Shown piece after piece: positions 19,517 to 55,290 of a stretch of DNA of 64,000 nt. Under the pieces are notes generated by a model. That model was not told the DNA's origin, searched no databases, and worked only from the letters and a program-made list of their open reading frames with translations. The stretch lies in assembly GCA_964019335.1 (NCBI GenBank), contig OZ025673.1:496001-560000 (forward strand), in the 5' to 3' direction. The DNA comes from Diplonema japonicum. Lineage: Eukaryota > Protista > Euglenozoa: Diplonemea. Positions within the stretch are counted from its first letter, which is position 1, and each line of letters opens with the position of its first letter. The translations under genes and the position numbers were made by a program.

Positions 19517-20677
19517 TTAAATATCATCATCATCAGCCTCCTTCGCGGCGAGGTCGTTCATCTCAGCGTCAACGTCGAACTTCTCGTACTTCTGGTTGTT
19601 CTTCTTTGCCTCGATCTCGTTCTTGTTCTTGTGGAGGGAGTATCCGAGGACGCCGAGGCAGAGGGCCATGAGGAGCCAGAGGAGGAGGAAGACCCAGAGG
19701 GACATGCAGAGGGATCCGATCTTGAGGCCCTCGCAGCACTCTCCGTCGCTGGTGGTTCCGAAGGGTCCCCTCCCCAGCTTGAAGGTGTAGTCCCTCTCGG
19801 TCACCCCAGAGTTGTGGTTCGCCACCTCCTGCCACACGGTCTCTCCGTCCTTCCCGGGGAGAACTGTCTTCTTGCAGAGCCTGTAGAAGGTCTCCGGCTC
19901 CGTTTCCTCTCCCGTCTCCATCATGGTGATCCCGCTGAAGGTGACCTCCGACATCCCCCTGTTCGCCCCGCCGTTGTTCTCCCTCCACCCGCTCAAGAAC
20001 ACTCCCTTCTTGCAGACAGCAGAGGCGTTCGCGCTCGTCCCCTCTCCCCACCCGAGCGCAACCACAGGCTCGTCAACCCCGTTCGTGAACCTGCACTCAT
20101 CCGAGATCTCAGGGAACTTCGCTCCCATCTTCTCGCAGCTCGTCTCGTTCTGCACGTTGTCGTTGTAGTAGGCGGGGATCACCACGTACTCGTCGTCAGC
20201 GTTGTTCCCGCACCCGATCAGCGTCAGCGAGAACTTCTTCTCCACCGTCGGCTCGTTCGGGAAGGTTGTGAACATGCGAGGGCCCGAGGGGTAGCACTCC
20301 TTCCGCGACGCGATCACCTCCCCGCAGTCCGCCACCTGCCCCGTCTGGTCCCTGCACACGCACGGGAACTCAGTCCTCCCTCCAGCCCCGCTCGTGCACG
20401 ACCCGTACTGGCCCTCCTTCCCGCTGCACCCGAAGTAAGGGAAGTCCTTCCCAGCAGAGCACTCGCTCCCCGCTCGACCGTTGCTGCACCTCCCCGCCCC
20501 GTCCATGAAGTACCCCTCCGCACAAGCCGCGCAAGCCTCCCCGGCCGTCGAGTTCATGTACCCCTGGTGGCACACGCAGCACCCGTCCGCTCCCACGTAC
20601 GCTCGGTTCTCGTTCACAGGGCACTGTCCCTGAACCGATGCCGCCAAACACACTAAACCGAATAGCAGTTTGTTCAT
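19517..20677 (-). CDS. Cys-rich type I membrane surface protein, copy 1 of 5 (386 aa)
   Basis: Signal peptide MNKLLFGLVCLAASVQG, EGF/laminin-like Cys cluster, one Ig-like repeat, TM helix (LWVFLLLWLLMALCLGVLGY), charged tail; strong GC3 codon bias. Confidence 0.9.
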   Translation of the reverse strand: MNKLLFGLVCLAASVQGQCPVNENRAYVGADGCCVCHQGYMNSTAGEACAACAEGYFMDGAGRCSNGRAGSECSAGKDFPYFGCSGKEGQYGSCTSGAGGRTEFPCVCRDQTGQVADCGEVIASRKECYPSGPRMFTTFPNEPTVEKKFSLTLIGCGNNADDEYVVIPAYYNDNVQNETSCEKMGAKFPEISDECRFTNGVDEPVVALGWGEGTSANASAVCKKGVFLSGWRENNGGANRGMSEVTFSGITMMETGEETEPETFYRLCKKTVLPGKDGETVWQEVANHNSGVTERDYTFKLGRGPFGTTSDGECCEGLKIGSLCMSLWVFLLLWLLMALCLGVLGYSLHKNKNEIEAKKNNQKYEKFDVDAEMNDLAAKEADDDDI

Positions 20678-20889
20678 TGTTCTTGTTTTTTTTTTTTTTT
20701 TTTTTTTTTAGAAAATAAAATGTGTTTCGTTTGTGTTCCCTTTCTGAGATAAGTTTGTTTGGTTTTGTTTTCTTTGTTTTCAAGTTTTCTTCTTTTTGTC
20801 TTGGTTTTGAAAGAGAAAAAAAAAAAACCCCCCTCCATAACACGGGCTGAAGAACAAAAGGGGCGTGTTCCTTCTTCTTGTGCAGGTCA

Positions 20890-20986
20890 TCATGTCATCC
20901 AAGTAAAGTTAAGGTAGAATGGTTGTTGGTATCAAGAGACACGAAATGCCTTCAAGCCAAATGCCAAGGTTGATAATCACTCATGA
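20890..20986 (-). ncRNA. Box C/D snoRNA variant a (predicted guide for LSU rRNA equivalent of yeast Am2280, snR13-like)
   Basis: Terminal stem TCATG/CATGA, C box GTGATTA, D' TTGA, D ATGA. The D' guide GGCATTTGGC is antisense to the conserved LSU sequence GCCAAAUGCC. Confidence 0.8.
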
Positions 20987-21015
20987 GGCCAGAAAGCAAA
21001 AACAACAGCTGCAAA

Positions 21016-21109
21016 GACTCATCCAAGAAATGTTAAGGTAGAATGGTTGCTGGTATCAAGAAACAAGAATTGCCTTCAAGCCAAATGCCAAAGTTGATAA
21101 TCATCGGTC
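21016..21109 (-). ncRNA. Box C/D snoRNA variant b
   Basis: GAC/GTC terminal stem, C box ATGATTA, the same D' guide, D box ATGA. Confidence 0.8.
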
Positions 21110-21141
21110 CTCTTGAAACAAAGGTGGTATACAGCTTGCAG

Positions 21142-21475
21142 GTCTCTCGGGCTATGAGGTGGCAGCTAGACGTACAAAAAAAACTCAAATTAACATGCAA
21201 ACTCCCAGAGCGAAAGCCGCATGCCCTAAAAAGGGAGGGGGTATGGTCAGTACTAGGTATCTCTCAGTTTCGATCTAATCTTGCGACTCCTCCAAGTGCT
21301 GATCTCTTCAGGCAAGAAGCACCCTTCATTGGCTCCCACAGCGTCCCAGCAGGTTTGGAGAGTACTTTTCCCGACCACGGTCTCCGCATTCGCTCTGTGG
21401 ACAAGGCTATGGAGAGCCAGGTCCTTAGTGGCTCCTGCGCGAAAAAAAAAAGGAATAGCTGTGTTATACATCCCT
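21142..21475 (-). pseudogene. AGA-box (H/ACA-like) snoRNA interrupted by a 258-bp insertion in its poly(U) loop
   Basis: Both halves match the intact unit at 21776-21843; the insertion sits inside the A-run. Confidence 0.75.
21184..21441 (-). mobile_element. 5'-truncated non-LTR retrotransposon fragment (CRE-like REL-endonuclease C-terminus plus 3' UTR)
   Basis: Absent from the paralogous unit at 31218-31285 and flanked by A8 and A10 runs. With one frameshift it reads LRTWLSIA-VHRANAETV, resembling the CRE-clade C-terminal RLS(V/I)A(L/V)QRGNA motif, then TAG at 21253-21255. Confidence 0.6.
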
Positions 21476-21523
21476 GTGAGACACAATCCACCGCACACCC
21501 CCCACTATGGGTCGTAAGGGTGC

Positions 21524-21620
21524 TCATGTCATCCAAGTAAAGTTAAGGTAGAATGGTTGTTGGTATCAAGAGACACGAAATGCCTTCAAGCCAAATGCCA
21601 AGGTTGATAATCACTCATGA
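21524..21620 (-). ncRNA. Box C/D snoRNA variant a
   Basis: Copy of 20890-20986. Confidence 0.8.
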
Positions 21621-21649
21621 GGCCAGAAAGCAAAAACAACAGCTGCAAA

Positions 21650-21743
21650 GACTCATCCAAGAAATGTTAAGGTAGAATGGTTGCTGGTATCAAGAAACAA
21701 GAATTGCCTTCAAGCCAAATGCCAAAGTTGATAATCATCGGTC
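21650..21743 (-). ncRNA. Box C/D snoRNA variant b
   Basis: Copy of 21016-21109. Confidence 0.8.
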
Positions 21744-21775
21744 CTCTTGAAACAAAGGTGGTATACAGCTTGCAA

Positions 21776-21843
21776 GTCTCTCGGGCTATGAGGTGGCAGC
21801 TAGACGTACAAAAAAAAAAGGAATAGCTGTGTTATACATCCCT
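21776..21843 (-). ncRNA. Single-hairpin AGA-box (H/ACA-like) pseudouridylation guide snoRNA
   Basis: 68 nt. Lower stem GGGATG/CAT..CCC, pocket TATAACA / CCACCT, upper stem CAGCTA/TAGCTG. The AGA box lies 15 nt from the upper stem and 3 nt from the end, the trypanosomatid/Euglena architecture. Confidence 0.75.
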
Positions 21844-21891
21844 GTGAGACACAATCCACCGCACACCCCCCACTATGGGTCGTAAGGGTGC

Positions 21892-21988
21892 TCATGTCAT
21901 CCAAGTAAAGTTAAGGTAGAATGGTTGTTGGTATCAAGAGACACGAAATGCCTTCAAGCCAAATGCCAAGGTTGATAATCACTCATGA
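21892..21988 (-). ncRNA. Box C/D snoRNA variant a
   Basis: Copy of 20890-20986. Confidence 0.8.
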
Positions 21989-22028
21989 TCAGCCGCAAAA
22001 GGGAAAACGTTCGTATCATTCTTCCTCT

Positions 22029-22097
22029 GTCTCTCGGGCTATGAGGTGGCAGCTAGACGTACAAAGAAAAAGGAATAGCTGTGTTATATACATCCCT
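22029..22097 (-). ncRNA. AGA-box snoRNA, variant with 2-nt longer 5' pocket
   Basis: Same stems and AGA box as 21776-21843. Confidence 0.72.
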
Positions 22098-22149
22098 GAG
22101 CAAGACAAACGGACCCTTGTTTCTATCATCAATTGAAAGAACAGCCAAA

Positions 22150-22243
22150 GACTCATCCAAGAATAATTAAGGTAGAATGGTTGTTTGGTATCAATAAACA
22201 CGAATGTCTTCAAGCCAAATGCCAAAGTTGATAATCATCGGTC
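22150..22243 (-). ncRNA. Box C/D snoRNA variant c
   Basis: Boxes, D' guide and CCATTCTACCTTAA are conserved while the internal sequence has diverged. Confidence 0.78.
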
Positions 22244-22265
22244 TTTTCTCCTTTCACTAAAGTTT

Positions 22266-22335
22266 GGCTCTCGGGCTATGAGGTGGCAGCTAGACGTACA
22301 AAAAAAAAAGGAATAGCTGTGTTATATACATCCCT
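22266..22335 (-). ncRNA. AGA-box snoRNA
   Basis: Same stems and AGA box. Confidence 0.72.
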
Positions 22336-22366
22336 GCACACAGAACACTATGGGTCGTAAGGGTGC

Positions 22367-22463
22367 TCATGTCATCCAAGTAAAGTTAAGGTAGAATGGT
22401 TGTTGGTATCAAGAGACACGAAATGCCTTCAAGCCAAATGCCAAAGTTGATAATCACTCATGA
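22367..22463 (-). ncRNA. Box C/D snoRNA variant a
   Basis: Near-identical to 20890-20986. Confidence 0.78.
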
Positions 22464-22847: not shown

Positions 22848-22883
<36 letters not shown>

Positions 22884-23617
22884 AAAAGAAAAAAGAGAGG
22901 GAAATGAAAATAAAAGGGTTCAGCAGGCAAATTAATGTAGCTATTCCCTGAGTAAAACAGGAAGGGAAATATAAAAAAATATAAAAAAACGAGATACAGA
23001 CAAAACGAGGGGGAAAAAAAAAAGAAAATAGATTTTCACCAGCCATTTTTTCTTTAAACATTATAATTTAACATTAACAAAGAAAGGGGGGGGGGGGTAA
23101 TGAATAAAAATAATGAGGGATGGGTGGGGGGAAACAGAATTGCTGATTCAAAATAAAAAAAAGGGGGGAAATAAAATCGCTTGCAACGGAATGGGCGGAT
23201 ATTCAACTGGGAAAATATTATTTTCTTCATAAATACCCCCCTTTTTTTTCTCCAATCCTCTTCGACTCCTGCTTGAAGTCTTGAAAGAATTGCATCCAAA
23301 AAATAAAGCAAGGCACCCCTCTGTTCTTAAAAGATTTTTTTTGATCGTAGCAAGAAGGGGTGGTCTGTGGGGAACGGTGAACAAAGACAATAAGGAACTG
23401 ATTTTAAAAAAAGGAGGGGGGAAAGGGAGAAATGGCATGGGTGGGGGGGGGGGGGGGGGGGGTAGTTTGGAAATGGTTCATCTCCTAGGGGGTTTATATT
23501 CCGTTTTTACGATCCAACTTTAGCATGCACTTTATATAAAAATAAAATAAAAGTGAATCCCATCATCAGATTCTGTGTAAGATTCGCCCTTGCTAGCAAG
23601 GGATTCAGTGCATGTAC

Positions 23618-24778
23618 CTAAATGTCATCATCATCAGCCTCCTTCGCGGCGAGGTCGTTCATCTCAGCGTCAACGTCGAACTTCTCGTACTTCTGGTTGT
23701 TCTTCTTTGCCTCGATCTCGTTCTTGTTCTTGTGGAGGGAGTATCCGAGGACGCCGAGGCAGAGGGCCATGAGGAGCCAGAGGAGGAGGAAGACCCAGAG
23801 GGACATGCAGAGGGATCCGATCTTGAGGCCCTCGCAGCACTCTCCGTCGCTGGTGGTTCCGAAGGGTCCCCTCCCCAGCTTGAAGGTGTAGTCCCTCTCG
23901 GTCACCCCAGAGTTGTGGTTCGCCACCTCCTGCCACACGGTCTCTCCGTCCTTCCCGGGGAGAACTGTCTTCTTGCAGAGCCTGTAGAAGGTCTCCGGCT
24001 CCGTTTCCTCTCCCGTCTCCATCATGGTGATCCCGCTGAAGGTGACCTCCGACATCCCCCTGTTCGCCCCGCCGTTGTTCTCCCTCCACCCGCTCAAGAA
24101 CACTCCCTTCTTGCAGACAGCAGAGGCGTTCGCGCTCGTCCCCTCTCCCCACCCGAGCGCAACCACAGGCTCGTCAACCCCGTTCGTGAACCTGCACTCA
24201 TCCGAGATCTCAGGGAACTTCGCTCCCATCTTCTCGCAGCTCGTCTCGTTCTGCACGTTGTCGTTGTAGTAGGCGGGGATCACCACGTACTCGTCGTCAG
24301 CGTTGTTCCCGCACCCGATCAGCGTCAGCGAGAACTTCTTCTCCACCGTCGGCTCGTTCGGGAAGGTTGTGAACATGCGAGGGCCCGAGGGGTAGCACTC
24401 CTTCCGCGACGCGATCACCTCCCCGCAGTCCGCCACCTGCCCCGTCTGGTCCCTGCACACGCACGGGAACTCAGTCCTCCCTCCAGCCCCGCTCGTGCAC
24501 GACCCGTACTGGCCCTCCTTCCCGCTGCACCCGAAGTAAGGGAAGTCCTTCCCAGCAGAGCACTCGCTCCCCGCTCGACCGTTGCTGCACCTCCCCGCCC
24601 CGTCCATGAAGTACCCCTCCGCACAAGCCGCGCAAGCCTCCCCGGCCGTCGAGTTCATGTACCCCTGGTGGCACACGCAGCACCCGTCCGCTCCCACGTA
24701 CGCTCGGTTCTCGTTCACAGGGCACTGTCCCTGAACCGATGCCGCCAAACACACTAAACCGAATAGCAGTTTGTTCAT
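23618..24778 (-). CDS. Cys-rich type I membrane surface protein, copy 2 of 5
   Basis: Identical protein to copy 1; TAG stop; unique 5' flank. Confidence 0.9.
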   Translation of the reverse strand: MNKLLFGLVCLAASVQGQCPVNENRAYVGADGCCVCHQGYMNSTAGEACAACAEGYFMDGAGRCSNGRAGSECSAGKDFPYFGCSGKEGQYGSCTSGAGGRTEFPCVCRDQTGQVADCGEVIASRKECYPSGPRMFTTFPNEPTVEKKFSLTLIGCGNNADDEYVVIPAYYNDNVQNETSCEKMGAKFPEISDECRFTNGVDEPVVALGWGEGTSANASAVCKKGVFLSGWRENNGGANRGMSEVTFSGITMMETGEETEPETFYRLCKKTVLPGKDGETVWQEVANHNSGVTERDYTFKLGRGPFGTTSDGECCEGLKIGSLCMSLWVFLLLWLLMALCLGVLGYSLHKNKNEIEAKKNNQKYEKFDVDAEMNDLAAKEADDDDI

Positions 24779-24859: not shown

Positions 24860-27800
24860 CTAAGCGGCAGAAAGTACGGAGATATCTGAATCGTGCTGGA
24901 GAGCAGGAAGGTGAGGGAGGAGAATGGGGGCTGTGTTCGGGTGCTCGAGGATGAAAGACTTCGTGAGGAGGGCTTGGGGGATGTGAGGGACAATGGCGGG
25001 CGTGAGGGCGAGAGCTTGTGCTGTGAATGGTGGGTGGTGCTGCAAGGCGAGGGAGGCTGCGCGGTACACCGCAACGGAAGAAGGGCTCCGCATGTTTTTC
25101 ATGGCGAAAAGCAGCAGCTCCTCGTCATCTGTGTAGTACGTGGTGACGACGTCTAGAACACTCTTCACCCAACACGCACCTAGCTCGATGGCCTTCAGCA
25201 CAACATCTCTGTCCTTCTGCAAGGCCTCGGGCAGCATTCGGAACACGCCGGCGATGACGTTCACCTGTTCACAGTTCGCCAGTATCTGCGCAACGACCTC
25301 TTTGTCCTCCAACAGCGTCCTCGGTATGACTTTGGTAAAGTTCAACAATGGAACCTTAGTAGGGCGAGCAAGCAACCGCATTACAGTGTACTTGGTCATA
25401 GGAGGCTTGCAGGGCACATGCGAGAGAAGGAGCTGTGTTGTGTTACTGTTCTGCAGTGCTGCGAAGATGACTTCGTCGTGAGTTTGCATCGGAGGGGGGA
25501 GGCTGAGGTAGACGGCCAACGTGTCGGACTGCGAGCATCTTGAAACAGCGACAACAACCGTTGCAGGGGCAACGTCGGGGAGGAGAAGCGTGAGGATCAC
25601 AGGCACGCACCGCGCAGACACAATTTTAAGTACCCCCTCTAACACGCCGCGACCGAGACGCGAGACCAGCGTCGCAACGTCGCTCCCAGGGAGGTTGCGC
25701 AACAAGGCGGCTATAAGCCCCACGTTATCAGGAGTTCCCGAAAGAACATCTTTGACAAAACCCACCTTCTTATCAGTGTGATGGATCCGATCGGCAACAT
25801 ATATAACCTCCTCCGCGCTGAGAGTCAACAACACCGACAGCACCGGGTCCGCACCCGTGGCACACGGCCGCATGGTACGTTTGTTCAGATAGCTGATTAG
25901 GTTTTCAGGGTGGCGTTGCTGCTCAGGAGTTAACGTCGCTTCAAAACCAACATCCAAAAGCTCCTCCCCGAGGCTCGTGAGGAACATAATGGTGTGGTCG
26001 TCGGGTACTCTTGCGACGCGGTTCAAAAAGGTGGCGGCGTATGGGCTGTCTTGTAACAACCGTAGAATGCTGCATGTATAAGAAGGGTTGTCAAGGATCG
26101 CTGCGGGGATCTTCCGCACGTCGAATGGGAAGAAACGGATCTGCCTGTCCAGTGCCGCGCGGACCACGTCCGTGTTGTGCTTCACGTTGCTCGGCATTGC
26201 TTGGAAGACGCCCTTCAGAAACTCTTCTGATGTGTTGCTGACCGCGATTATCGCCAGCGACACGGTTGCAGAGGTTGCTTCCGATGAAGCAAATAGTTTC
26301 GTGACGATGCCGCCCCGTTCATCGTTTTCCACGAATTTTTCGTTCACACGTTTGTTTTTCAGTTCTTGGGGTACAATATCCCACAGCTCCTGTACCTCGT
26401 TCGTCTCACTTGCCTTCTCCACCAAGACGTCAAGAATTTTCCCGCTATTTTTCAACACGTCTGGCAGGTCCTGGAAAACCAACGCCGTGCTGAAGCACCT
26501 CTCGACGGCAACCCGGTGCTGCACGGCCGCAATAAGGCAGGGATCTGTTTTTTCGCTCGGTTGGAGGGATTTCAAAAGACTATGAAACGTCAGAGGAGGG
26601 CTGTCTGCGAGCGACGCAGCTATGAAAGGACCCGACGACAGGAATGCGTTCCCCCTTCCTCTGGATGGGCGCAGGAGCTCGTCGGTTTTTGTGGTTTTTT
26701 TGCGGAAACCGCACGATAGAAGAAGCGGGCTGGTTTGCAGCTCTACAGAAACATGTCGAAAATACTCAATAAAAACCCCCGCAGGAAGACCCTCTGACAC
26801 ATCTAAAACAGTCTCTAAATCAGACACAAATCTTTTCGGAAGCTTCTTAACCACCACGTCGATGGTGGTGCCCTGCACGCTCAGCGCCTGCAACGCCGAC
26901 TTGACGTCCCATTGCGCTTCAGAAGGGATCGTTTCCAACGTTTTTACAGATAACCCAACATCGTCTTGCAGCAATGTGGCAACCATTGAAAAAACTGCGT
27001 CGGGCTGTACCTGAACCTCCAAAGGGAGGGATTCATACAGCCCGATACGGTTAGCGGGTGAAAGGTGCGACAGAACCTTCACAGTTGTTTCGGGGTACAT
27101 TTTGATCTTTTCAACCAGCTTCGTCTCGACACCGTCATCAAGCACTTTTCTGCGTTCTAGGAACGACAGGAAGACCCCGGGCCTGTTCCAATACTCTTCT
27201 GGTATTCTATCGAACATCGATACTGCACCGTGATCGCAGGCGCATGCTACCAGCTCATCGCTCAGTATCCCGCACACATAATGCACAGCAGCATCGTTCC
27301 ACTTCCATTGATTCAAAACTGTTATGACAATTTGTTCGGTTATTTTGAAGGTGGTTCCGTAGGCTTCGAGGAATGCCCAGCCTCCTTTGTTGCAGCATTG
27401 CAAGACATTGCCGGGGTGTTCCCTCCATGTCTGCGGGGACCGGTTCCAAATATCCAAGACGAGGTCTGGACTGGAAACAGCGTCGAGAACGGTGGAGAAA
27501 AACCCCTCAGGAGGATCACTTAGAGTCCCGAGCACACTTAACGAGAGGTTGCCTGAGAAGGATAGTATGGTTTGTACCATTGTGTTGGTTAGCTGTTCCG
27601 GTTTAACGTTGTGCATTGTGTTGTAGATTTCCACTGTTTTTTGAGGTGAGATTCTGGGAAATGTTTGAACGCACACGTTGTGAGGGGCTTGCAAGATGAA
27701 CACGGTGGGAAGGGCCTCCACAACATCATCGGATACCTTTTGCAGCAGGAAGCACAGGATCGCACCGTCAGCCAAGGAGGTGTCCGGTATTTTCGCCAGA

Positions 27801-28282
27801 GTCTCGTTAACACCCTCCGACGGGACAGTTGCGAGAACCGTTTTGCAGAACGACTGGTCTTCAAAAACACTTTTTGGAACGGCACGGAGCAGGTCCATAG
27901 ACCGCGACTTCAAACAGGTTTCGAACACATGCGATGCGAGCGAGACCTCTTCTTGCAAAGCTGGTGAGAATGCTTTATAGGTCTCTATTGCGTTGTGGGC
28001 GGAGGTTTTTACCTTAAATATCGCGTCCTTCACCTTGTTCTCCCATTCTGCCGAGCGGAGTAACTCTAAAGTGCTGCCGAGACCTCCTGCCGAGCAGCAG
28101 CACTCTGAAGCTATCCAGCAATCTTCCAATTCTTCCTCCGCGCCTTCGTTCCGTAGGGCAGCCATCTCCCGCCTGATGCCCGTCTGGTTTTCAACTTCGC
28201 AGAGCAGCATCGCAATTGTATCATGCTCCTTGACATCCACCCACACGGTGTCACCACCTGGTAGCTTGATGCAAATATCCAT
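24860..28282 (-). CDS. Ubiquitin-like N-terminal domain plus DUF4116-like helical repeat protein (~1140 aa)
   Basis: Ubiquitin-like start MDICIKLPGGDTVWVDVKEHDTIAMLLCEVENQTGI. Recurrent 'lPeelqkDrdVVlkAi' repeats (LPEALQKDRDVVLKAIE, MPSNVKHNTDVVRAAL). Confidence 0.75.
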   Translation of the reverse strand: MDICIKLPGGDTVWVDVKEHDTIAMLLCEVENQTGIRREMAALRNEGAEEELEDCWIASECCCSAGGLGSTLELLRSAEWENKVKDAIFKVKTSAHNAIETYKAFSPALQEEVSLASHVFETCLKSRSMDLLRAVPKSVFEDQSFCKTVLATVPSEGVNETLAKIPDTSLADGAILCFLLQKVSDDVVEALPTVFILQAPHNVCVQTFPRISPQKTVEIYNTMHNVKPEQLTNTMVQTILSFSGNLSLSVLGTLSDPPEGFFSTVLDAVSSPDLVLDIWNRSPQTWREHPGNVLQCCNKGGWAFLEAYGTTFKITEQIVITVLNQWKWNDAAVHYVCGILSDELVACACDHGAVSMFDRIPEEYWNRPGVFLSFLERRKVLDDGVETKLVEKIKMYPETTVKVLSHLSPANRIGLYESLPLEVQVQPDAVFSMVATLLQDDVGLSVKTLETIPSEAQWDVKSALQALSVQGTTIDVVVKKLPKRFVSDLETVLDVSEGLPAGVFIEYFRHVSVELQTSPLLLSCGFRKKTTKTDELLRPSRGRGNAFLSSGPFIAASLADSPPLTFHSLLKSLQPSEKTDPCLIAAVQHRVAVERCFSTALVFQDLPDVLKNSGKILDVLVEKASETNEVQELWDIVPQELKNKRVNEKFVENDERGGIVTKLFASSEATSATVSLAIIAVSNTSEEFLKGVFQAMPSNVKHNTDVVRAALDRQIRFFPFDVRKIPAAILDNPSYTCSILRLLQDSPYAATFLNRVARVPDDHTIMFLTSLGEELLDVGFEATLTPEQQRHPENLISYLNKRTMRPCATGADPVLSVLLTLSAEEVIYVADRIHHTDKKVGFVKDVLSGTPDNVGLIAALLRNLPGSDVATLVSRLGRGVLEGVLKIVSARCVPVILTLLLPDVAPATVVVAVSRCSQSDTLAVYLSLPPPMQTHDEVIFAALQNSNTTQLLLSHVPCKPPMTKYTVMRLLARPTKVPLLNFTKVIPRTLLEDKEVVAQILANCEQVNVIAGVFRMLPEALQKDRDVVLKAIELGACWVKSVLDVVTTYYTDDEELLLFAMKNMRSPSSVAVYRAASLALQHHPPFTAQALALTPAIVPHIPQALLTKSFILEHPNTAPILLPHLPALQHDSDISVLSAA

Positions 28283-29592
28283 TTTCTCCCCTTTTTTTCT
28301 TCTTTTTTTTGGTTGTGTTAAAGAAGTTTTTTGTTGAGCTGAATAGAAAGAAAAAAAAAAAGTGAAATGTGCTTGGGAAAGAGTTTTCAAAGGGCGGGAA
28401 GAAAGGAAAAAAGAAAACAAAAATAGGGGGGGGACGGGGGGAGGAGGAGTAGATGTGGGTTTATTGGGAATAATAATAAGAATTATAGAAAGTCATGGAA
28501 GAGTACGGGGCGCGGGGTGATAATAAAAAAAAAGTGGGGGGGGGAGAGAAGAAAGGTGCGTAGGCAGTGTCTTGGAGTAGAAACTGAATGAACAGGGGAA
28601 AGGAAGCACATATGTTATATGTTACAAATGAAAAAAAAAGGGGGAGTGAGGGGAGTGAGAGGTGAAGAAGAGGGAGAGGGTTCCTGTTTTCCTGCTCTAA
28701 GCAGTCCGACAGATGCGACAGGCTTCGATGAGACGTAGTTCTTCTTTGAAATTTCTCTTCAAGACGCTAATCTTCTTCCCTTTCTTTGTGTGGTCTTCTC
28801 TTCTTTTTTTTCGTTTTTTTTTTTAATAAATAGAATAATAAGGGGGGGGAGGGGACTATCGTTCTTGTTTTTTTTTACCAAGGAAAAAAAAAGAGAGAGC
28901 AGTAAAGCTTCTTTTTTATTCATTTTCCATTTTCTTTTTTTTTTTTTCCACTCGTTTCTTAAATTTTTTTTTTCCCCTTATCCACGACGGGAAAAAAAAG
29001 AAAACAAAACAAAACAAAAAAAAAAAAGAAAAAGAATATTGGCACGTTAGCTGATCCATCTCCCCTCCCTTCCCTTCCCTTCCCTCCACACCTTTCGTTT
29101 TTTTTTTTTTTTTTTTTGTTTTTCCTTTTTTTTTTTTTTTTTTTTTTCCTTCCTGTGTGCTGAAGTTTCTCCCTCACATCAGTGGTTGTTTTCTTTTTTT
29201 TTTTTTTTCTTCATCTTCTTTTTTTGTTGCAGCAGAGAGAAAGAGGAGAACAAAGCAAAGCAAGAAGATATTACAGGGAAACATCAAATGATAAAAAGAA
29301 AGCGGAATAAAAGGAAAAAAAAAGAATAAAATGCACGTTGCGCACAAAACCATTCTTTTTTCTCTTGCGTTTATTCACTTCTTTTACGCTTTCACTTGGT
29401 CCCCCTTTCTTCTTTTCCCTTTTTTCTTTTTTTTTTCTTTTGCTTCTTATTATTTTTCCCGCCTCTTCTTCTTTTTTTTTAATTGTAGCTTTGCGGTACC
29501 ACTTGCATAACACTCTGCACTAGTTCTCTGTAACGATTTTATCACACCATCACCACCGTGCTGTCTGCTTCTTTCTTTCTTCTCGTCAGCGC

Positions 29593-30753
29593 TTAAATGT
29601 CATCATCATCAGCCTCCTTCGCGGCGAGGTCGTTCATCTCAGCGTCAACGTCGAACTTCTCGTACTTCTGGTTGTTCTTCTTTGCCTCGATCTCGTTCTT
29701 GTTCTTGTGGAGGGAGTATCCGAGGACGCCGAGGCAGAGGGCCATGAGGAGCCAGAGGAGGAGGAAGACCCAGAGGGACATGCAGAGGGATCCGATCTTG
29801 AGGCCCTCGCAGCACTCTCCGTCGCTGGTGGTTCCGAAGGGTCCCCTCCCCAGCTTGAAGGTGTAGTCCCTCTCGGTCACCCCAGAGTTGTGGTTCGCCA
29901 CCTCCTGCCACACGGTCTCTCCGTCCTTCCCGGGGAGAACTGTCTTCTTGCAGAGCCTGTAGAAGGTCTCCGGCTCCGTTTCCTCTCCCGTCTCCATCAT
30001 GGTGATCCCGCTGAAGGTGACCTCCGACATCCCCCTGTTCGCCCCGCCGTTGTTCTCCCTCCACCCGCTCAAGAACACTCCCTTCTTGCAGACAGCAGAG
30101 GCGTTCGCGCTCGTCCCCTCTCCCCACCCGAGCGCAACCACAGGCTCGTCAACCCCGTTCGTGAACCTGCACTCATCCGAGATCTCAGGGAACTTCGCTC
30201 CCATCTTCTCGCAGCTCGTCTCGTTCTGCACGTTGTCGTTGTAGTAGGCGGGGATCACCACGTACTCGTCGTCAGCGTTGTTCCCGCACCCGATCAGCGT
30301 CAGCGAGAACTTCTTCTCCACCGTCGGCTCGTTCGGGAAGGTTGTGAACATGCGAGGGCCCGAGGGGTAGCACTCCTTCCGCGACGCGATCACCTCCCCG
30401 CAGTCCGCCACCTGCCCCGTCTGGTCCCTGCACACGCACGGGAACTCAGTCCTCCCTCCAGCCCCGCTCGTGCACGACCCGTACTGGCCCTCCTTCCCGC
30501 TGCACCCGAAGTAAGGGAAGTCCTTCCCAGCAGAGCACTCGCTCCCCGCTCGACCGTTGCTGCACCTCCCCGCCCCGTCCATGAAGTACCCCTCCGCACA
30601 AGCCGCGCAAGCCTCCCCGGCCGTCGAGTTCATGTACCCCTGGTGGCACACGCAGCACCCGTCCGCTCCCACGTACGCTCGGTTCTCGTTCACAGGGCAC
30701 TGTCCCTGAACCGATGCCGCCAAACACACTAAACCGAATAGCAGTTTGTTCAT
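29593..30753 (-). CDS. Cys-rich type I membrane surface protein, copy 3 of 5
   Basis: Identical protein; shares its 5' flank and snoRNA array with copy 1. Confidence 0.9.
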   Translation of the reverse strand: MNKLLFGLVCLAASVQGQCPVNENRAYVGADGCCVCHQGYMNSTAGEACAACAEGYFMDGAGRCSNGRAGSECSAGKDFPYFGCSGKEGQYGSCTSGAGGRTEFPCVCRDQTGQVADCGEVIASRKECYPSGPRMFTTFPNEPTVEKKFSLTLIGCGNNADDEYVVIPAYYNDNVQNETSCEKMGAKFPEISDECRFTNGVDEPVVALGWGEGTSANASAVCKKGVFLSGWRENNGGANRGMSEVTFSGITMMETGEETEPETFYRLCKKTVLPGKDGETVWQEVANHNSGVTERDYTFKLGRGPFGTTSDGECCEGLKIGSLCMSLWVFLLLWLLMALCLGVLGYSLHKNKNEIEAKKNNQKYEKFDVDAEMNDLAAKEADDDDI

Positions 30754-30965
30754 TGTTCTTGTTTTTTTTTTTTTTTTTTTTTTTTAGAAAATAAAATGTG
30801 TTTCGTTTGTGTTCCCTTTCTGAGATAAGTTTGTTTGGTTTTGTTTTCTTTGTTTTCAAGTTTTCTTCTTTTTGTCTTGGTTTTGAAAGAGAAAAAAAAA
30901 AAACCCCCCTCCATAACACGGGCTGAAGAACAAAAGGGGCGTGTTCCTTCTTCTTGTGCAGGTCA

Positions 30966-31776
30966 TCATGTCATCCAAGTAAAGTTAAGGTAGAATGGTT
31001 GTTGGTATCAAGAGACACGAAATGCCTTCAAGCCAAATGCCAAGGTTGATAATCACTCATGAGGCCAGAAAGCAAAAACAACAGCTGCAAAGACTCATCC
31101 AAGAAATGTTAAGGTAGAATGGTTGCTGGTATCAAGAAACAAGAATTGCCTTCAAGCCAAATGCCAAAGTTGATAATCATCGGTCCTCTTGAAACAAAGG
31201 TGGTATACAGCTTGCAGGTCTCTCGGGCTATGAGGTGGCAGCTAGACGTACAAAAAAAAAAGGAATAGCTGTGTTATACATCCCTGTGAGACACAATCCA
31301 CCGCACACCCCCCACTATGGGTCGTAAGGGTGCTCATGTCATCCAAGTAAAGTTAAGGTAGAATGGTTGTTGGTATCAAGAGACACGAAATGCCTTCAAG
31401 CCAAATGCCAAGGTTGATAATCACTCATGATCAGCCGCAAAAGGGAAAACGTTCGTATCATTCTTCCTCTGTCTCTCGGGCTATGAGGTGGCAGCTAGAC
31501 GTACAAAGAAAAAGGAATAGCTGTGTTATATACATCCCTGAGCAAGACAAACGGACCCTTGTTTCTATCATCAATTGAAAGAACAGCCAAAGACTCATCC
31601 AAGAATAATTAAGGTAGAATGGTTGTTTGGTATCAATAAACACGAATGTCTTCAAGCCAAATGCCAAAGTTGATAATCATCGGTCTTTTCTCCTTTCACT
31701 AAAGTTTGGCTCTCGGGCTATGAGGTGGCAGCTAGACGTACAAAGAAAAAGGAATAGCTGTGTTATATACATCCCT
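30966..31776 (-). ncRNA. Tandem snoRNA array B: C/D at 30966-31062, 31092-31185, 31334-31430, 31592-31685; AGA-box at 31218-31285, 31471-31539, 31708-31776
   Basis: Same units as array A, with no retro-insertion. Confidence 0.8.
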
Positions 31777-31812
31777 GAGCAAGACGAACAGTTCCCCTTC
31801 TTACAGCAAGGC

Positions 31813-36285: not shown

Positions 36286-36497
36286 TTTTTTTTTTTTTTT
36301 CCCTTCGTTCCTTTTTTTTTTTTTTGGTTGAAATTTAAAAAAAATAAATAAATAAATAAAGGAGGGGGGGGGGGAGAAAACTAAAATTTGATGTAAAAGA
36401 GAAGAAAAAAAAAAGTAAAAAAAATAATAATAATTCACGGGGGGGAAAAAGAAAGTTTCTAGATTCTTTTCATCTTCTTTTTTTTTTCTTTTTTTTG

Positions 36498-37390: not shown

Positions 37391-37444
37391 TTTTTTTTTT
37401 TCTTCCCCCACTCCTCTTCCTGTTATTCGTTCTCAACCGATCAA

Positions 37445-37483
<39 letters not shown>

Positions 37484-39412: not shown

Positions 39413-39469
<57 letters not shown>

Positions 39470-40556: not shown

Positions 40557-40594
<38 letters not shown>

Positions 40595-41442: not shown

Positions 41443-41484
<42 letters not shown>

Positions 41485-41568
41485 CTTTAATAAATTTTTT
41501 TGGTTTCTTGACCCTTTTTTTTTTTTCTTTTCTTTCCTTCTTTTTTTTTTTTTTTTTTTTTTTCCAAC

Positions 41569-42711: not shown

Positions 42712-42769
42712 TGTAACTGTGGGATATTCGCTTGAGAAAAGGGAAGCTGAAATGTAAGAAAAAAGGAAT

Positions 42770-44248
42770 TTACAGCACTACCTCCACGGAAGTAGGAGGG
42801 GGTGCGGGCGAGCCCACCGTGCTTTCATCCTCACATTTTATCAGCAGCTGGCGCAGCTTGGAGACCTGCTGTGTGGGTGTCGTGTTGTAGGAGAGCAGCG
42901 GCGAGAGCACCAGCTGCGCCTCGTTCTGGACCTGCTTCCCGTGGTTGTTGACATTCTTCCAGCAGCTCTCTAAGTTAGAAACCAGCATGTTGTGCCTGTG
43001 ATGTCTTTGGACCGCTTTGCTTCGCATCATGTTTTCCTTGTGTTCCTGCCTCTTTCTAGCCCGTGCTGCTTTGACCACCTTCTGTGTGTTGTTGTGAGCC
43101 AACATGTCTAGGCTTTCCTGCTTCGACCGTGTCACCACGTCCTGGTGGTCCTTGCTGAACTGGTCGGAGATGTCGTTGAACATCTCCTGCTGGTCCCGCT
43201 CTTTCCGCACTAGCTCTTCGTACCTCTCGAGCACTCCACGTCGCCTGCCTTCAGCGGCTACCTGCGACTCATTGATGTCCTCGTTTGCTGCATGCAGGCC
43301 TGACCGCCACATGTGGTACTTCACATTTTGCTCTGACAGTTTTTGCAACACCTTTTCTCTTCTTGTTTCCGTTATTATGTGTGCCTTCTCTTTGATATGC
43401 TCGGCGTGGGCCTGTTTGTGGCAGGATTTCGCTGTTGTCGTCTCCAATCGACGCTTCTCAAGCGTCAGCACCTTCTTCCTTCTCTCTGTCTCGTTCTTTT
43501 CGCTGTCCGCAACACTCCGTTCATGGCTGTCGTTCACAAGCTCCTTCCCTTTCTGATTCGCACGCAAGGATTCGTTAAAGGTTTCCGCCATCGCCTTCAC
43601 CTTTTCTGCGAGAATCCCGTTTCGCCTTCTGTGTCCCGCCCGACGGCGTTCCTCCTGTGTCTTAGCTCTCTCCTCTTTGAGGCTTGCAACTTGGTCTCTG
43701 TGCTTCTGCATCTGTTCTAGATACTTGGCACGATTCGTGAGGTTGGTTTTACGCCTCTCGTCTGCCTCCCTCCGTTTCTTGTTAGCCTCCGAGAGGCGCT
43801 GGTACCGCTCTTGAAGAACCTGCGAGTCGTGCGACATCTTTGCATTGTGGTCTTTGATCTCCGCTGTCTTCTTTGCAATGATCAGTGCTAAGGTGTGCCT
43901 CACGCAAGCCTTCTTTGAGGCGATCCGGTTCTCAGCAATGTCCCGCAGCGTCAGGCGCTCCTTTTCCCTCCTCCGCAACTCTTCTGCCTTCTTTTGCTCT
44001 TCATTCTCGAGTTTTGCAGCCTCTTCATCTAGTTGCGACAACAGCCCGAGGCGAGTCCTCTCCCGCAGCGCCATTCTTCGCTGTATCACGTCCTCTGGCA
44101 GCTTTCTGCTCTCAACGTCACTCCTCTTAACAGGCCGCAGTTCATCCTTATGAATCCCCAAGCGCAGCATCGCCTCACGCAGCACTCTCGGCTCGTGCAC
44201 CTTCACCTTTGGCGATGGGGGGTGTGGAATGAGCACTCCATTTTCCAT
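42770..44248 (-). CDS. Coiled-coil protein of unknown function (492 aa)
   Basis: Long E/K/R-rich ORF. Confidence 0.75.
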   Translation of the reverse strand: MENGVLIPHPPSPKVKVHEPRVLREAMLRLGIHKDELRPVKRSDVESRKLPEDVIQRRMALRERTRLGLLSQLDEEAAKLENEEQKKAEELRRREKERLTLRDIAENRIASKKACVRHTLALIIAKKTAEIKDHNAKMSHDSQVLQERYQRLSEANKKRREADERRKTNLTNRAKYLEQMQKHRDQVASLKEERAKTQEERRRAGHRRRNGILAEKVKAMAETFNESLRANQKGKELVNDSHERSVADSEKNETERRKKVLTLEKRRLETTTAKSCHKQAHAEHIKEKAHIITETRREKVLQKLSEQNVKYHMWRSGLHAANEDINESQVAAEGRRRGVLERYEELVRKERDQQEMFNDISDQFSKDHQDVVTRSKQESLDMLAHNNTQKVVKAARARKRQEHKENMMRSKAVQRHHRHNMLVSNLESCWKNVNNHGKQVQNEAQLVLSPLLSYNTTPTQQVSKLRQLLIKCEDESTVGSPAPPPTSVEVVL

Positions 44249-44289
44249 TTTTGCCTTTCTGCTTAGAGCTCTGTTCAGAAAATGTAATA

Positions 44290-45714
44290 CTACTGTAACT
44301 GCGTTTCAAGGTCACTGAAAGCCGTACGTAAGTGGGCCATCACCTCTTCGTGCTGCACCCTGTAAGAGCCCCCTTCGTGGGGTATCATGTGGTAGGTAAG
44401 CGCAAGGCGTGCGGAAGTCGTGTAGTAGCAGAGGTTGGCCTTGTGGTAGGGGATCATTTCAATGACATGTGCAGGGGGCGACATGAAGAGGATGTTGGCG
44501 AGGTTGGCACCGTGGGGGCCAAAGACAGTCCCGGAGGTGCGAAAAAGGTGGAGCTGCTTGAGGACAGGCAGCCCAAGGTGGACCTTGAAGGTCTTGTGCT
44601 GGAAGGTTTTCGTTACGTTTAAAAGTACTTCCCTGTAGTTTGAGGGCATCCTGCTGTTGTGTTTGCGCTCAGCAAGCACGACTCTGTCGGCTTTGGTGGT
44701 TTCCTGCGGCAGCGGGCTTAGACCATCGAACACCACCCGCCTTAAGATGAAGAGGGTGCCCGTGAAGACGTTCCCACAGCGCTGGGGTTGTGGGAAATAC
44801 AACTTTTTGAAGAGGTAGTTGCCTGGTTTCAAGATCTGCTCTTTGCCGACGCCTAGAATCTCGAGAAACCTCATTTGGAAGGAGCTCTTGACAGGAAGAA
44901 CTAGTTTGGCATCTCTGTTGTGCTTGAGAACAGCAGCAACAAGTGCCACACGAGGGAGATGCTCGTGCGTCCAATGGAAGTACCCCCCACACCATGAATC
45001 GCACACGACAGCCCCTTGGTCATACGTCACCCATGTCGAAGGTGGTTTCCTGGGTGCCTCCCATAGACAAGCGCCAGTACCATATGTTCTATTGCACATC
45101 ACAGCATACCCTTTCTGCACCCAAGCGTTGCGAAAAACAGCAACATATGAAGGCGGCTGCCAAGGGAGCCTCTGGGCATGGGACACCACAGTGCTGGTGT
45201 TGACTGTGGGGACAAAGGCGGCTTTCCACCCTCCGAAAGGCTTTGTGATGTCGAACCGCGTGTTGTATGAGATTGGGATGTCCGTGCGCACCTCGGCACT
45301 CTCTTCCGATAAACGCACCACTTCTACCGAAGGGTCAGCTTCCAGTGTCTCTAGAAACCTCTTTGTCGTCACCTCTCCAGGCCGTGGCTTCCTGTGGTTG
45401 TACTCGATGCGTTTCATTTTTACACCATCTGGGCATGTCCCCTCTTCGTGCCACGTCACTTCTGGTGCAAGGAACTTCTTGAACGGCTGAAGCAAGTCAA
45501 CTTTTTCTCTCAGCTCCTTTGCCACATGTCTTTTTAACTTTACTTTTACCTCGCTATGCAAACGCTGTCTTCCCACTAAACCCTGTCCCCTGACCACTGA
45601 ACCTTGTCTCCTCACTACTAAGTCCTGTCCCCCCACCGCGAACAGCATCAGCACCGCAAGCCCCACACCGAGCGTGCCGAGTAACAGCGTTGCCAATAGG
45701 CATCTTACCCTCAT
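44290..45714 (-). CDS. Glycosyltransferase family 61 (DUF563), type II membrane protein
   Basis: N-terminal TM anchor; YFHWTHEHLPR and GPHGANLANILFM..VIEMIP motifs. Confidence 0.88.
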   Translation of the reverse strand: MRVRCLLATLLLGTLGVGLAVLMLFAVGGQDLVVRRQGSVVRGQGLVGRQRLHSEVKVKLKRHVAKELREKVDLLQPFKKFLAPEVTWHEEGTCPDGVKMKRIEYNHRKPRPGEVTTKRFLETLEADPSVEVVRLSEESAEVRTDIPISYNTRFDITKPFGGWKAAFVPTVNTSTVVSHAQRLPWQPPSYVAVFRNAWVQKGYAVMCNRTYGTGACLWEAPRKPPSTWVTYDQGAVVCDSWCGGYFHWTHEHLPRVALVAAVLKHNRDAKLVLPVKSSFQMRFLEILGVGKEQILKPGNYLFKKLYFPQPQRCGNVFTGTLFILRRVVFDGLSPLPQETTKADRVVLAERKHNSRMPSNYREVLLNVTKTFQHKTFKVHLGLPVLKQLHLFRTSGTVFGPHGANLANILFMSPPAHVIEMIPYHKANLCYYTTSARLALTYHMIPHEGGSYRVQHEEVMAHLRTAFSDLETQLQ

Positions 45715-52354: not shown

Positions 52355-54129
52355 GATGGGTCTTCTCTTCTTTTTTTTTTTTGTTTTTTTTTTTCCCCCA
52401 TCCACAAAATCAACCAAAAAAAAGAACGAGAAAAAAAAAAAAAAAAACCGAGAGGGATAATAATAAAAAATAAATGAATAAAAAAAAAGTTGGGGAAAAG
52501 AAACTGGGGGGGGGGGATAAAAAGAAAAAAAGGAGAGGAAATGCAAGAGAGGAAAAAAAAAGAAAACAGGGGATAAAAAAGAGGGGGGGAAGAGAGCGAG
52601 CAAAGCCCCTTATATTATACAAGGCCTAATTCTGGTAGAGAAAAATAGTAGGGATAGGGGGGGGGGGGGGGAAATATAAGGAAGCCGGCGGCGGAGTGGA
52701 GTAAAAAAAAAAAATGAAAACCCAGCTTCGGGCCTGTGTGTGTATTTCTTTTTCCGTCATTTTCGTTTGTTTTTTTTTTCTTACATTCTCTACTTCCCTC
52801 CGTTGAGTTCCTTCTATTTAGTTGCTTTTTTTTTTTAATTTATTTCATTTGTTTTTACCCTTCTTTTCAGAAAAAAAAAGAAGAGGGAGGGGAGGGGGGG
52901 GTTCAAGATCTAAAGACGAACGCGGGGCTTCCTTGTTATTTCGGTGTTTCACCAACTTTCTTTTAATGTTTCTTCTTTTTTTTTTTAAAGTTTTTTTTTC
53001 CCCTTCTTTCCTTCTTACTTCATAAAAATATAAAGAAGAAGGAAATAAAGAAAATTTTTAAAAAAAAATAAAATCTGAGAAGCCACAGCAAAAAGGAGAA
53101 AAAAAAAACTTTCGGAAAAGAAAAAAAAAGGGGGGGCACCACAAAAAGCGTAGTTGAAGGGGAAAAAAATAAAAGAATGCATGGTTTGGAAAAAAGAAAA
53201 AAAAAAAGCGCCTTTGTTTGGAGGGAGAGAAAAGAAAAACAGGACGTATGGGTCCACATAAGAGAGAAAAAAAAATTGCACTGTTTTGCCTTTTTCACAC
53301 CTTTATTTTCTTTTCTTTCCTCCTCCAGCCACAAACCTGTTGCTTCTATTAACCTTCCTTTCTCTTCTTTTCTCGTCTGCAAAAAAAAATCTTTCCCTTT
53401 TCTTCAGTATGAACACCTAGTGCCTGCGTGGAATATCGCTAAAACCAGCAAAAAGGAAAAAAAAGCGAAGAGAGAAAAAAGAAAAAAAAAACGTCTTGTA
53501 GTTTTTTTTCTTTTTTTTTTTTTCCCCTCTCCCTTTTTTTTCATTTTCTATGTAAAAAGTAGAGTTTATAAGGGGACACAAGAAGAAAGTATTTTTTTTC
53601 TTTTCTTTTTTTTTTTTTTTTTTCTTTCCCCTGGAAAAAGAATACTGAAACAAACAAACAAAAAAAAAAAAAGTTCGCCAAATGCAATCAGGGGGAACTA
53701 AACAAGAAGAGAGGCAACTAACAAAAAGGGGGGAAACAAAGCATGGCAGGTGTAATTCTTATACTTAATTTCTCCACTTATTACAGCAGGAAGCACGTGC
53801 AAAGTCGAAGTCAGTGAAAAAAGACAGGCAGAGCCCAGGCAAACAAAACGTCAATTCTTTTTTTTCTCTACTTTTTTATTTCCTTCCTTATTTCCTTTAA
53901 AGAAGGCCACCTCCATAGCTGACACACCGGAGGTGAAGGAGAGGGATCACCGCAAAGTCGAAAAGCGGAGCGACAAGAACAAGCTGAAGACAAGATACGC
54001 ATTTTGGGTAGTGCAGCACTTTATATTAAAAAATGTTTGTTAAGGTAAATAAAATAAAATAAAAGTGAATCCCATCATCAGATTCTGTGTAAGATTCGCC
54101 CTTGCTAGCAAGGGATTCAGTGCATGTAC

Positions 54130-55290
54130 CTAAATGTCATCATCATCAGCCTCCTTCGCGGCGAGGTCGTTCATCTCAGCGTCAACGTCGAACTTCTCGT
54201 ACTTCTGGTTGTTCTTCTTTGCCTCGATCTCGTTCTTGTTCTTGTGGAGGGAGTATCCGAGGACGCCGAGGCAGAGGGCCATGAGGAGCCAGAGGAGGAG
54301 GAAGACCCAGAGGGACATGCAGAGGGATCCGATCTTGAGGCCCTCGCAGCACTCTCCGTCGCTGGTGGTTCCGAAGGGTCCCCTCCCCAGCTTGAAGGTG
54401 TAGTCCCTCTCGGTCACCCCAGAGTTGTGGTTCGCCACCTCCTGCCACACGGTCTCTCCGTCCTTCCCGGGGAGAACTGTCTTCTTGCAGAGCCTGTAGA
54501 AGGTCTCCGGCTCCGTTTCCTCTCCCGTCTCCATCATGGTGATCCCGCTGAAGGTGACCTCCGACATCCCCCTGTTCGCCCCGCCGTTGTTCTCCCTCCA
54601 CCCGCTCAAGAACACTCCCTTCTTGCAGACAGCAGAGGCGTTCGCGCTCGTCCCCTCTCCCCACCCGAGCGCAACCACAGGCTCGTCAACCCCGTTCGTG
54701 AACCTGCACTCATCCGAGATCTCAGGGAACTTCGCTCCCATCTTCTCGCAGCTCGTCTCGTTCTGCACGTTGTCGTTGTAGTAGGCGGGGATCACCACGT
54801 ACTCGTCGTCAGCGTTGTTCCCGCACCCGATCAGCGTCAGCGAGAACTTCTTCTCCACCGTCGGCTCGTTCGGGAAGGTTGTGAACATGCGAGGGCCCGA
54901 GGGGTAGCACTCCTTCCGCGACGCGATCACCTCCCCGCAGTCCGCCACCTGCCCCGTCTGGTCCCTGCACACGCACGGGAACTCAGTCCTCCCTCCAGCC
55001 CCGCTCGTGCACGACCCGTACTGGCCCTCCTTCCCGCTGCACCCGAAGTAAGGGAAGTCCTTCCCAGCAGAGCACTCGCTCCCCGCTCGACCGTTGCTGC
55101 ACCTCCCCGCCCCGTCCATGAAGTACCCCTCCGCACAAGCCGCGCAAGCCTCCCCGGCCGTCGAGTTCATGTACCCCTGGTGGCACACGCAGCACCCGTC
55201 CGCTCCCACGTACGCTCGGTTCTCGTTCACAGGGCACTGTCCCTGAACCGATGCCGCCAAACACACTAAACCGAATAGCAGTTTGTTCAT
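54130..55290 (-). CDS. Cys-rich type I membrane surface protein, copy 5 of 5
   Basis: Identical protein; TAG stop; shares its proximal 3' flank with copy 2. Confidence 0.9.
   Translation of the reverse strand: MNKLLFGLVCLAASVQGQCPVNENRAYVGADGCCVCHQGYMNSTAGEACAACAEGYFMDGAGRCSNGRAGSECSAGKDFPYFGCSGKEGQYGSCTSGAGGRTEFPCVCRDQTGQVADCGEVIASRKECYPSGPRMFTTFPNEPTVEKKFSLTLIGCGNNADDEYVVIPAYYNDNVQNETSCEKMGAKFPEISDECRFTNGVDEPVVALGWGEGTSANASAVCKKGVFLSGWRENNGGANRGMSEVTFSGITMMETGEETEPETFYRLCKKTVLPGKDGETVWQEVANHNSGVTERDYTFKLGRGPFGTTSDGECCEGLKIGSLCMSLWVFLLLWLLMALCLGVLGYSLHKNKNEIEAKKNNQKYEKFDVDAEMNDLAAKEADDDDI

Follow-up and report, generated by a model that had tools for sequence, protein, structure and literature searches.

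The stretch of DNA analyzed here, 64,000 nucleotides (nt) of contig OZ025673.1 from the marine, free-living diplonemid Diplonema japonicum (hereafter the window), contains five copies of a single 1161-bp open reading frame (ORF), which encodes a predicted membrane protein of 386 amino acids (aa). All five copies are on the minus strand.

19517 to 20677, minus strand: copy 1, stop codon TAA, penultimate Asp codon GAT.
23618 to 24778, minus strand: copy 2, stop codon TAG; the ORF extends to an in-frame upstream ATG at 24826, whereas homologues begin at the ATG common to the five copies.
29593 to 30753, minus strand: copy 3, stop codon TAA.
34096 to 35256, minus strand: copy 4, stop codon TAA; the ORF extends upstream to 35385.
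54130 to 55290, minus strand: copy 5, stop codon TAG; located on the far side of a scaffold gap.

As assessed by base-by-base comparison of the five coding sequences (CDS), 1159 of the 1161 positions are invariant, synonymous sites included, and the same result was obtained with a repeat finder and by self-BLAST of the window. The first variable position, at offset 1 on the plus strand, is the third base of the stop codon, which is TAA in copies 1, 3, and 4, and TAG in copies 2 and 5. The second, at offset 7, is synonymous, with GAT in copy 1 only and GAC in all the others. Both sites are therefore within 7 nt of the stop-side end of the CDS, and copies 3 and 4 are identical throughout. A first-pass annotation of this DNA had described the five CDS as identical save for one GAT/GAC and one TAA/TAG difference, which our alignment bears out exactly, and had proposed that copies be counted across the genome. 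When the entire genome (62.5 Mb in 132 contigs, the scope of all our genome-wide searches) was searched at the DNA level, exactly five copies were found, all of them in the window, where they span ∼36 kb. A protein search revealed one additional, diverged paralogue on another chromosome (contig C5:487861-488846, locus L012), displaying 34-45% aa identity. Its N- and C-terminal halves match in different frames, with a frame change near residue 160 that could correspond to an intron or a frameshift. At the DNA level, this paralogue matches the five copies only over a stretch of 192-203 nt with 83-84% identity, in the part encoding the transmembrane helix and the tail.

The five-copy CDS is rich in G+C at third codon positions (GC3), as noted at first pass. 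Its GC3 is 0.855, compared with 0.60-0.72 in most neighboring genes, 0.81 in one neighbor, and 0.88 in β-tubulin. Although this fits high expression, it could equally fit GC-biased gene conversion in multi-copy genes. On the plus strand, antisense ORFs of 341-381 aa overlap all the copies (19631-20656, 23612-24757, 29707-30732, 34210-35235, and 54124-55269), and these are most likely a by-product of GC3-rich codon usage rather than genes.

The DNA surrounding the copies is very different from the CDS. Outside two pairs of copies, 1/3 and 2/5, exact identity continues for merely 1-7 nt past the ATG and 0-1 nt past the stop codon, which confirms the earlier claim that identity stops almost exactly at these two codons. 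The flanks shared within the two pairs are as follows.

20678 to 22463, minus strand: 5′ flank of copy 1, of which the first 506 nt are shared with copy 3, followed by a small-RNA-like array.
30754 to 31790, minus strand: 5′ flank of copy 3, a duplicate of the copy 1 flank and array, 99.6-100% identical.
23539 to 23617, minus strand: 79-nt 3′ flank at copy 2, found only at copies 2 and 5, where it goes with the TAG variant.
54051 to 54129, minus strand: 79-nt 3′ flank at copy 5, as at copy 2.

In copies 1 and 3, the common 5′ flank comprises 506 nt and continues into the repeated small-RNA-like array, most of which is also common to both, in two blocks with the self-BLAST coordinates 19516-21183 = 29592-31259 (99.94% identity) and 21524-22336 = 30966-31777 (99.6%). 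A 258-bp piece of the copy 1 array (21184-21441) has no counterpart at copy 3, where the flank is otherwise identical. When the region 18000-56500, which takes in both of these arrays, was searched against Rfam at gathering score, there was no match. The 3′ flanks of copies 2 and 5 diverge after 79 nt. We considered and rejected the possibility that this 79-nt segment is a dispersed regulatory or mobile element, as it is present only at copies 2 and 5 and its fold is non-significant (z = −1.9). For the other pairs of 600-nt flanks, Smith-Waterman scores corresponded to low-complexity matches only. The copies are thus mosaics. Copies 1 and 3 are alike on the 5′ side but unlike at the GAT/GAC site and in their 3′ flanks, whereas copies 2 and 5 are alike in their TAG stop codon and 79-nt 3′ flank, but unlike on the 5′ side. 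These pairings had been recognized in the first-pass annotation and are upheld here. Two of its statements needed adjustment. Copy 4, described as unique on both sides, has ∼13 nt before the ATG in common with copies 1 and 3 as assessed by BLAST, and is unique elsewhere. The count of four 5′ and four 3′ contexts is right for the 5′ flanks, which fall into four classes, and for the proximal 3′ flanks, but because copies 2 and 5 diverge after 79 nt there are five 3′ contexts overall. Since synonymous sites are invariant right beside flanks that cannot be aligned, purifying selection on the protein is insufficient to explain the identity of the five copies.

An identity this sharp could in principle be produced by the assembly, through the collapse of divergent copies to one consensus or through chimeric junctions. 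The published assembly (121 nuclear scaffolds, 62.30 Mb, with mitochondrial contigs listed up to MT11) was generated by hifiasm on 102x PacBio HiFi reads, followed by Hi-C scaffolding, and manual curation corrected 69 joins or mis-joins across it (PMC13598402). These corrections, and the presence of a scaffold gap within the region, are compatible with an artefact. The gap, which is the sole run of N in the window, is located in homopolymer-rich intergenic DNA.

36498 to 36697, no strand: assembly gap (200 N), dividing copies 1-4 from copy 5.

None of the copies is interrupted by it, the nearest on either side being copy 4, at 1241 bp, and copy 5, at 17.4 kb. Copies 1-4 are all on one side of it, so that what depends on scaffolding is the distance of copy 5 and its linkage to the others. 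A repeat of 1.16 kb is much shorter than HiFi reads, which here amount to 102x, and the word "polish" is absent from the paper, which describes no polishing step (PMC13598402). In addition, two variants have been retained among the copies and they co-vary with the class of flank, TAG being found with the 79-nt 3′ flank, and the same pattern is seen in tubulin genes on many chromosomes (see below). We therefore regard an assembly artefact as highly improbable.

The tubulin genes of the same genome were used as a control for CDS-limited homogenization. The Pfam Tubulin domain was found at 49 places on many contigs, and 13 of the 14 loci that were fetched correspond to a standard β-tubulin gene encoding 446 aa. 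On contig C58, six β-tubulin copies are clustered between 244941 and 280787 (loci L040-L046 and L066-L070) and differ at 0-1 positions in 1341 bp, while a seventh copy on the same contig, ∼140 kb off, shows 3-4 differences. Two copies on contig C12, ∼509 kb apart and on opposite strands, show 8 differences. Between chromosomes, there are 27-60 differences, nearly all of which are synonymous. In most β-tubulin pairs, the exactly identical stretch extends 3-18 nt upstream of the ATG and 0-3 nt downstream of the stop codon; for the seven copies on C58, it ends 1-18 nt from one or other of these codons. The flanks are again mosaic: L042, L043, and L044 have a common 5′ flank, L040, L041, and L043 have a common 3′ flank, and L044 and L046 share 60 nt of 3′ flank. 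When 50 kb of C58 were joined, 250539-259150 was found to be 99.988% identical to 257782-266392 over 8612 bp. This repeat has the structure CDS-X-CDS-X-CDS with both ends at CDS edges, as is classically produced when unequal crossing-over takes place within the CDS. Within this cluster, a unit of 7243 bp is exactly duplicated from CDS edge to CDS edge. The spacer at ∼253.1-256.8 kb, which is repeated at 260.3-264.0 and 274.8-278.5 kb, contains a degenerate internal tandem array with 78-88% identity between repeats.

Alpha-tubulin behaves similarly. Its full copies number at least 15 and are spread over 13 chromosomes, a dispersal that is unusual for a euglenozoan. Each encodes 451 aa, and the flanks are unrelated. 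The copies show 17-101 differences in 1356 bp, except for an identical pair 23 kb apart on contig C1, which has 367 nt of 3′ flank in common but only 3 nt of 5′ flank. For the tubulins as a whole, the number of differences follows distance, with 0-4 within ∼175 kb on the same contig, 8 at ∼509 kb, and 17-101 (1-7%) between chromosomes. One α-tubulin copy is an exception to this trend, as it is ∼620 kb from its partners on the same chromosome and shows 50 differences. Like the five-copy gene, the D. japonicum tubulins thus combine CDS-limited identity, mosaic flanks, high GC3, and greater similarity between closer copies. They differ from it in being spread over many chromosomes and, between chromosomes, 1-7% apart, whereas the copies of the membrane protein gene are on one chromosome and identical. 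Because β- and α-tubulin show the same pattern, CDS-limited homogenization is a general habit of this genome and not a device for this protein. The "CDS-restricted gene-conversion system" proposed at first pass for one surface protein is therefore right insofar as homogenization is CDS-limited, but wrong in making it special to that protein.

These findings suggest that the five copies have probably been homogenized by ectopic gene conversion and unequal crossing-over, i.e. by concerted evolution. All five copies are in one same-strand gene run, in which non-allelic gene conversion and unequal crossing-over would hold them identical. With the CDS as the only homology remaining between copies, exchanges would start and end within it, while the unconstrained, homopolymer-rich flanks would have drifted or been replaced. 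Exchanges ending inside the CDS would reshuffle the flanks and give the mosaic, or "combinatorial", pattern. Several features characteristic of concerted evolution were found, namely near-identical CDS including synonymous sites, diverged flanks, mosaic end-points inside the tract, and, in the tubulins, a stronger effect when copies are close. The two differences between copies are at the 3′ edge of the homology, where conversion is least efficient, which fits conversion. Together with the mosaic flanks, the distance trend of the tubulins, and the tubulin duplication ending at CDS edges, they argue for ectopic recombination among resident copies.

Several points weigh against this interpretation. 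Neighboring genes are not paralogous and intervening genes are not duplicated, and homogenization does not by itself account for the first arrival of CDS-sized copies between unrelated genes. Identity also ends at the ATG more sharply than simple erosion of the edges predicts. The flank-CDS-flank junctions are those of the assembly, and the comparison is between copies within the genome of one species, for which a very recent burst of copying would be a formal, if improbable, alternative.

Such a burst, in which CDS-sized cassettes were recently copied and no conversion is ongoing, might have involved retroposition of processed mRNA by active long interspersed nuclear elements (LINEs), or templated insertion during break repair. 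This would suit the unrelated neighbors and unduplicated intervening genes, the absence of introns in the five-copy gene, and the scattering of tubulin copies over many chromosomes. However, when the borders of the copies were searched for marks of processed retrocopies (spliced leader or untranslated region (UTR) sequence, poly(A), and target-site duplications), none was found. Indeed, for copies 2, 4, and 5, the 5′ flank has no leader-like or UTR sequence in common with that of any other copy, and inspection and flank alignment revealed neither a poly(A) remnant common to the borders nor a target-site duplication. Moreover, five independent breakpoints exactly at the ATG and stop codon are very improbable, and mosaic flanks and distance-dependent divergence in the tubulins indicate recombination between resident copies. 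We consider recent copying improbable.

Under concerted evolution, one protein would be produced from several transcripts with different UTRs, which would increase dosage and maybe allow copy-specific post-transcriptional control. Each pairing of 5′ and 3′ UTR might go further and correspond to a different expression program, e.g. in the trophic versus the swimming stage, with conversion only keeping the protein constant. This adaptive regulatory diversification would add to concerted evolution rather than replace it, and we put it forward tentatively, as possible rather than likely. The 5′ flanks are of four distinct kinds and the 3′ flanks of four to five, and the 3′ UTRs of D. papillatum are long (median ∼800 nt) and have been proposed to be platforms for regulatory proteins (PMC10161547). 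In trypanosomatids, the paralogues with dissimilar 3′ UTRs are those that differ most in expression (PMC4413820), and the life cycle of D. japonicum is complex (PMC5845003). On the other hand, tubulin copies have equally diverse flanks, which makes this diversity a by-product of recombination and drift for which selection is unneeded, and the 79-nt 3′ flank has no significant fold (z = −1.9). With genes in this genome arranged in same-strand runs, plain dosage accounts for multiple copies equally well. Analogy (PMC1533823, PMC4413820, PMC10161547) makes copy-specific regulation through the 5′ contexts (four) and 3′ contexts (four to five) plausible, while on our analysis multiple copies as a dosage device are the simplest reading.

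Sequence analysis predicts that the five-copy gene product is a type I membrane glycoprotein, for which placement at the cell surface would be reasonable. Its predicted features are a signal peptide, an epidermal growth factor (EGF)-like Cys-rich N terminus, and a β-rich ectodomain that contains most of the 24 cysteines. There are three predicted N-glycosylation sequons (N42, N177, and N217), and one predicted transmembrane helix (residues ∼323-346) is followed by a 40-residue tail with a YEKF sequence (YxxPhi-type motif) and an acidic C terminus, DDDDI. The Pfam family WBP-1 (PF11669) scores 20.6 bits over residues 311-365, in the transmembrane and tail region, which is below the cut-off of 28.1 bits, and the protein is therefore not a member. 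A word-based search identified nine homologues with 38-68% identity, consisting of one protein of D. papillatum (DIPPA_14321, the sole named source), six EukProt transcriptome proteins, and two proteins from ENA contigs. All match over their full length, including the invariant cysteines and a CCEGLKIG-transmembrane-tail module (alignment A1). The nearest orthologue, a transcriptome protein (P0002), has 68% aa identity. The family is small, its one named member being from a diplonemid, and among 1.84 billion cluster representatives a profile search returned only 37 matches at E ≤ 0.001. The weakest of these cover residues ∼16-71 and contain Pfam domains of the laminin or EGF-like type, which is the basis for describing the N terminus as EGF-like. 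Modeling by AlphaFold2 with a 10-sequence alignment gave a mean predicted local distance difference test (pLDDT) score of 62, and a Foldseek search of the PDB yielded no match (best TM-score 0.18). Because the model is poor and the Foldseek search was empty, no fold is assigned. An archive for antigenic variation, comparable to the variant surface glycoproteins (VSG), is unlikely, as the five proteins are identical and there is one further paralogue genome-wide.

As seen in the alignment, the module formed by the CCEGLKIG juxtamembrane sequence, the transmembrane helix, and the tail is far more conserved than the ectodomain. The same type of module, with the juxtamembrane sequence ECCEGLK(I/L)G, also terminates giant open frames of ∼8,500-13,000 aa in this genome (loci L013-L023), at the following positions.

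Contig C5, 5849-6043: module in a giant ORF.
Contig C64, 174928-175119: module in a giant ORF.
Contig C61, 489379-489570: module in a giant ORF.
Contig C63, 8957-9148: module in a giant ORF.
Contig C63, 409148-409342: module in a giant ORF.
Contig C111, 71659-71853: module in a giant ORF.
Contig C111, 117041-117235: module in a giant ORF.
Contig C11, 804448-804648: module in a giant ORF.

From its sequence, this module has the appearance of a membrane anchor and sorting tail used in common by diplonemid surface proteins, giant ones included, and it may serve as a marker for the diplonemid surface proteome.

The genes next to the five copies are unrelated to them. Two of them end close to the ATG of a copy.

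24860 to 28420, minus strand: unrelated gene encoding 1186 aa, between copies 3 and 2, with its stop codon 82 nt before the ATG of copy 2.
55413 to 57758, minus strand: unrelated gene encoding 781 aa, ending 123 nt before the ATG of copy 5.

We looked for paralogy among the neighboring genes, which would be a sign of an old segmental duplication, and found none; the intervening genes are not duplicated. All the ORFs of at least 200 aa that have a Pfam match or in-family homologues are on the minus strand, and plus-strand ORFs of at least 200 aa mostly overlap minus-strand genes and resemble antisense artefacts. Some consecutive minus-strand ORFs are separated by spacers of only 1 nt (16881-16883), 58 nt (42711-42770), and 41 nt (44248-44290), which leaves little room for polyadenylation and trans-splicing signals. 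Near the assembly gap, ORFs listed across it, e.g. 35848-36738, are artefacts of reading through X. A thioredoxin-domain gene on the minus strand has the gap upstream of it. Its exon 1 (∼35902-36285) matches Pfam PF00085 (E = 6.5e-29), in a search performed on exon 1 alone without joining the exons, and its one intron has a GT start at ∼35899. On the other side of the gap, a short minus-strand ORF fragment (36699-36866) that is truncated by the gap ends in a CCHC zinc knuckle (C-x2-C-x4-H-x4-C). It has no match in Pfam, and could represent the end of a gene for a transposase or a gag-like protein. The ∼5 kb next to the gap on this side (36700-41560), inside an otherwise dense minus-strand gene run, are without a long credible ORF and have a low G+C content (37-38%). 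Long homopolymers in this part include T54 at 39415-39468 and a T-rich run of 119 nt at 41445-41563.

The closest known case is that of β-tubulin in Leishmania, whose coding regions at three loci are described as "conserved and concerted", with ectopic gene conversion as a possible cause, while each locus has non-coding regions of its own (Jackson, Vaughan & Gull 2006, PMC1533823). The first-pass annotation drew an analogy with trypanosomatid arrays, which is apt. In both organisms, which are euglenozoans relying on post-transcriptional control, the CDS of dispersed paralogues are concerted, and in Leishmania the distinct non-coding regions are taken to give different expression. The D. japonicum gene is different in encoding a lineage-specific membrane protein of a free-living diplonemid, and in having its copies within ∼36 kb amid unrelated genes, with borders a few bases from the ATG and stop codon. 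In trypanosomatid tandem arrays, multiple copies are seen as a means of reaching a high transcript dosage when transcription is polycistronic (PMC4413820, PMC1621084). These arrays are also homogenized by crossing-over and conversion, and their UTRs differ mainly at the ends of the array (PMC4413820, PMC1621084). Their internal intergenic spacers are concerted too, whereas the spacers in D. japonicum are mostly unrelated and contain other genes, and the CDS alone is homogenized. Duplicated ribosomal protein genes of Leishmania likewise encode the same protein with mainly divergent UTRs, and distinct regulation is suspected (PMC11098316), but these are two-copy housekeeping genes, and that study is not concerned with how they are homogenized. 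No such CDS-limited pattern is mentioned in the D. papillatum genome paper (PMC10161547), and among the papers that could be searched, none tied diplonemids to concerted evolution of nuclear genes.

A bolder interpretation would be that diplonemid genomes homogenize dispersed paralogues genome-wide, within CDS boundaries and even between chromosomes, and that the five copies are stage- or condition-specific isoform genes for one invariant surface protein. Dispersal could then have occurred by an undescribed process, possibly linked to retroelements bearing the spliced leader. We consider this speculative and, on balance, doubtful. If it were true, any protein could be put under several sets of UTRs while remaining unchanged. 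Short of this, our findings suggest that CDS-limited concerted evolution, long known in trypanosomatid parasites, probably also occurs in a free-living diplonemid, in an unusually sharp form that involves both dispersed and tandem copies. Identical CDS with unique UTRs will confound RNA-seq quantification and gene models in this genome. By the same token, these unique UTRs are handles for gauging the extent of post-transcriptional regulation in diplonemids.

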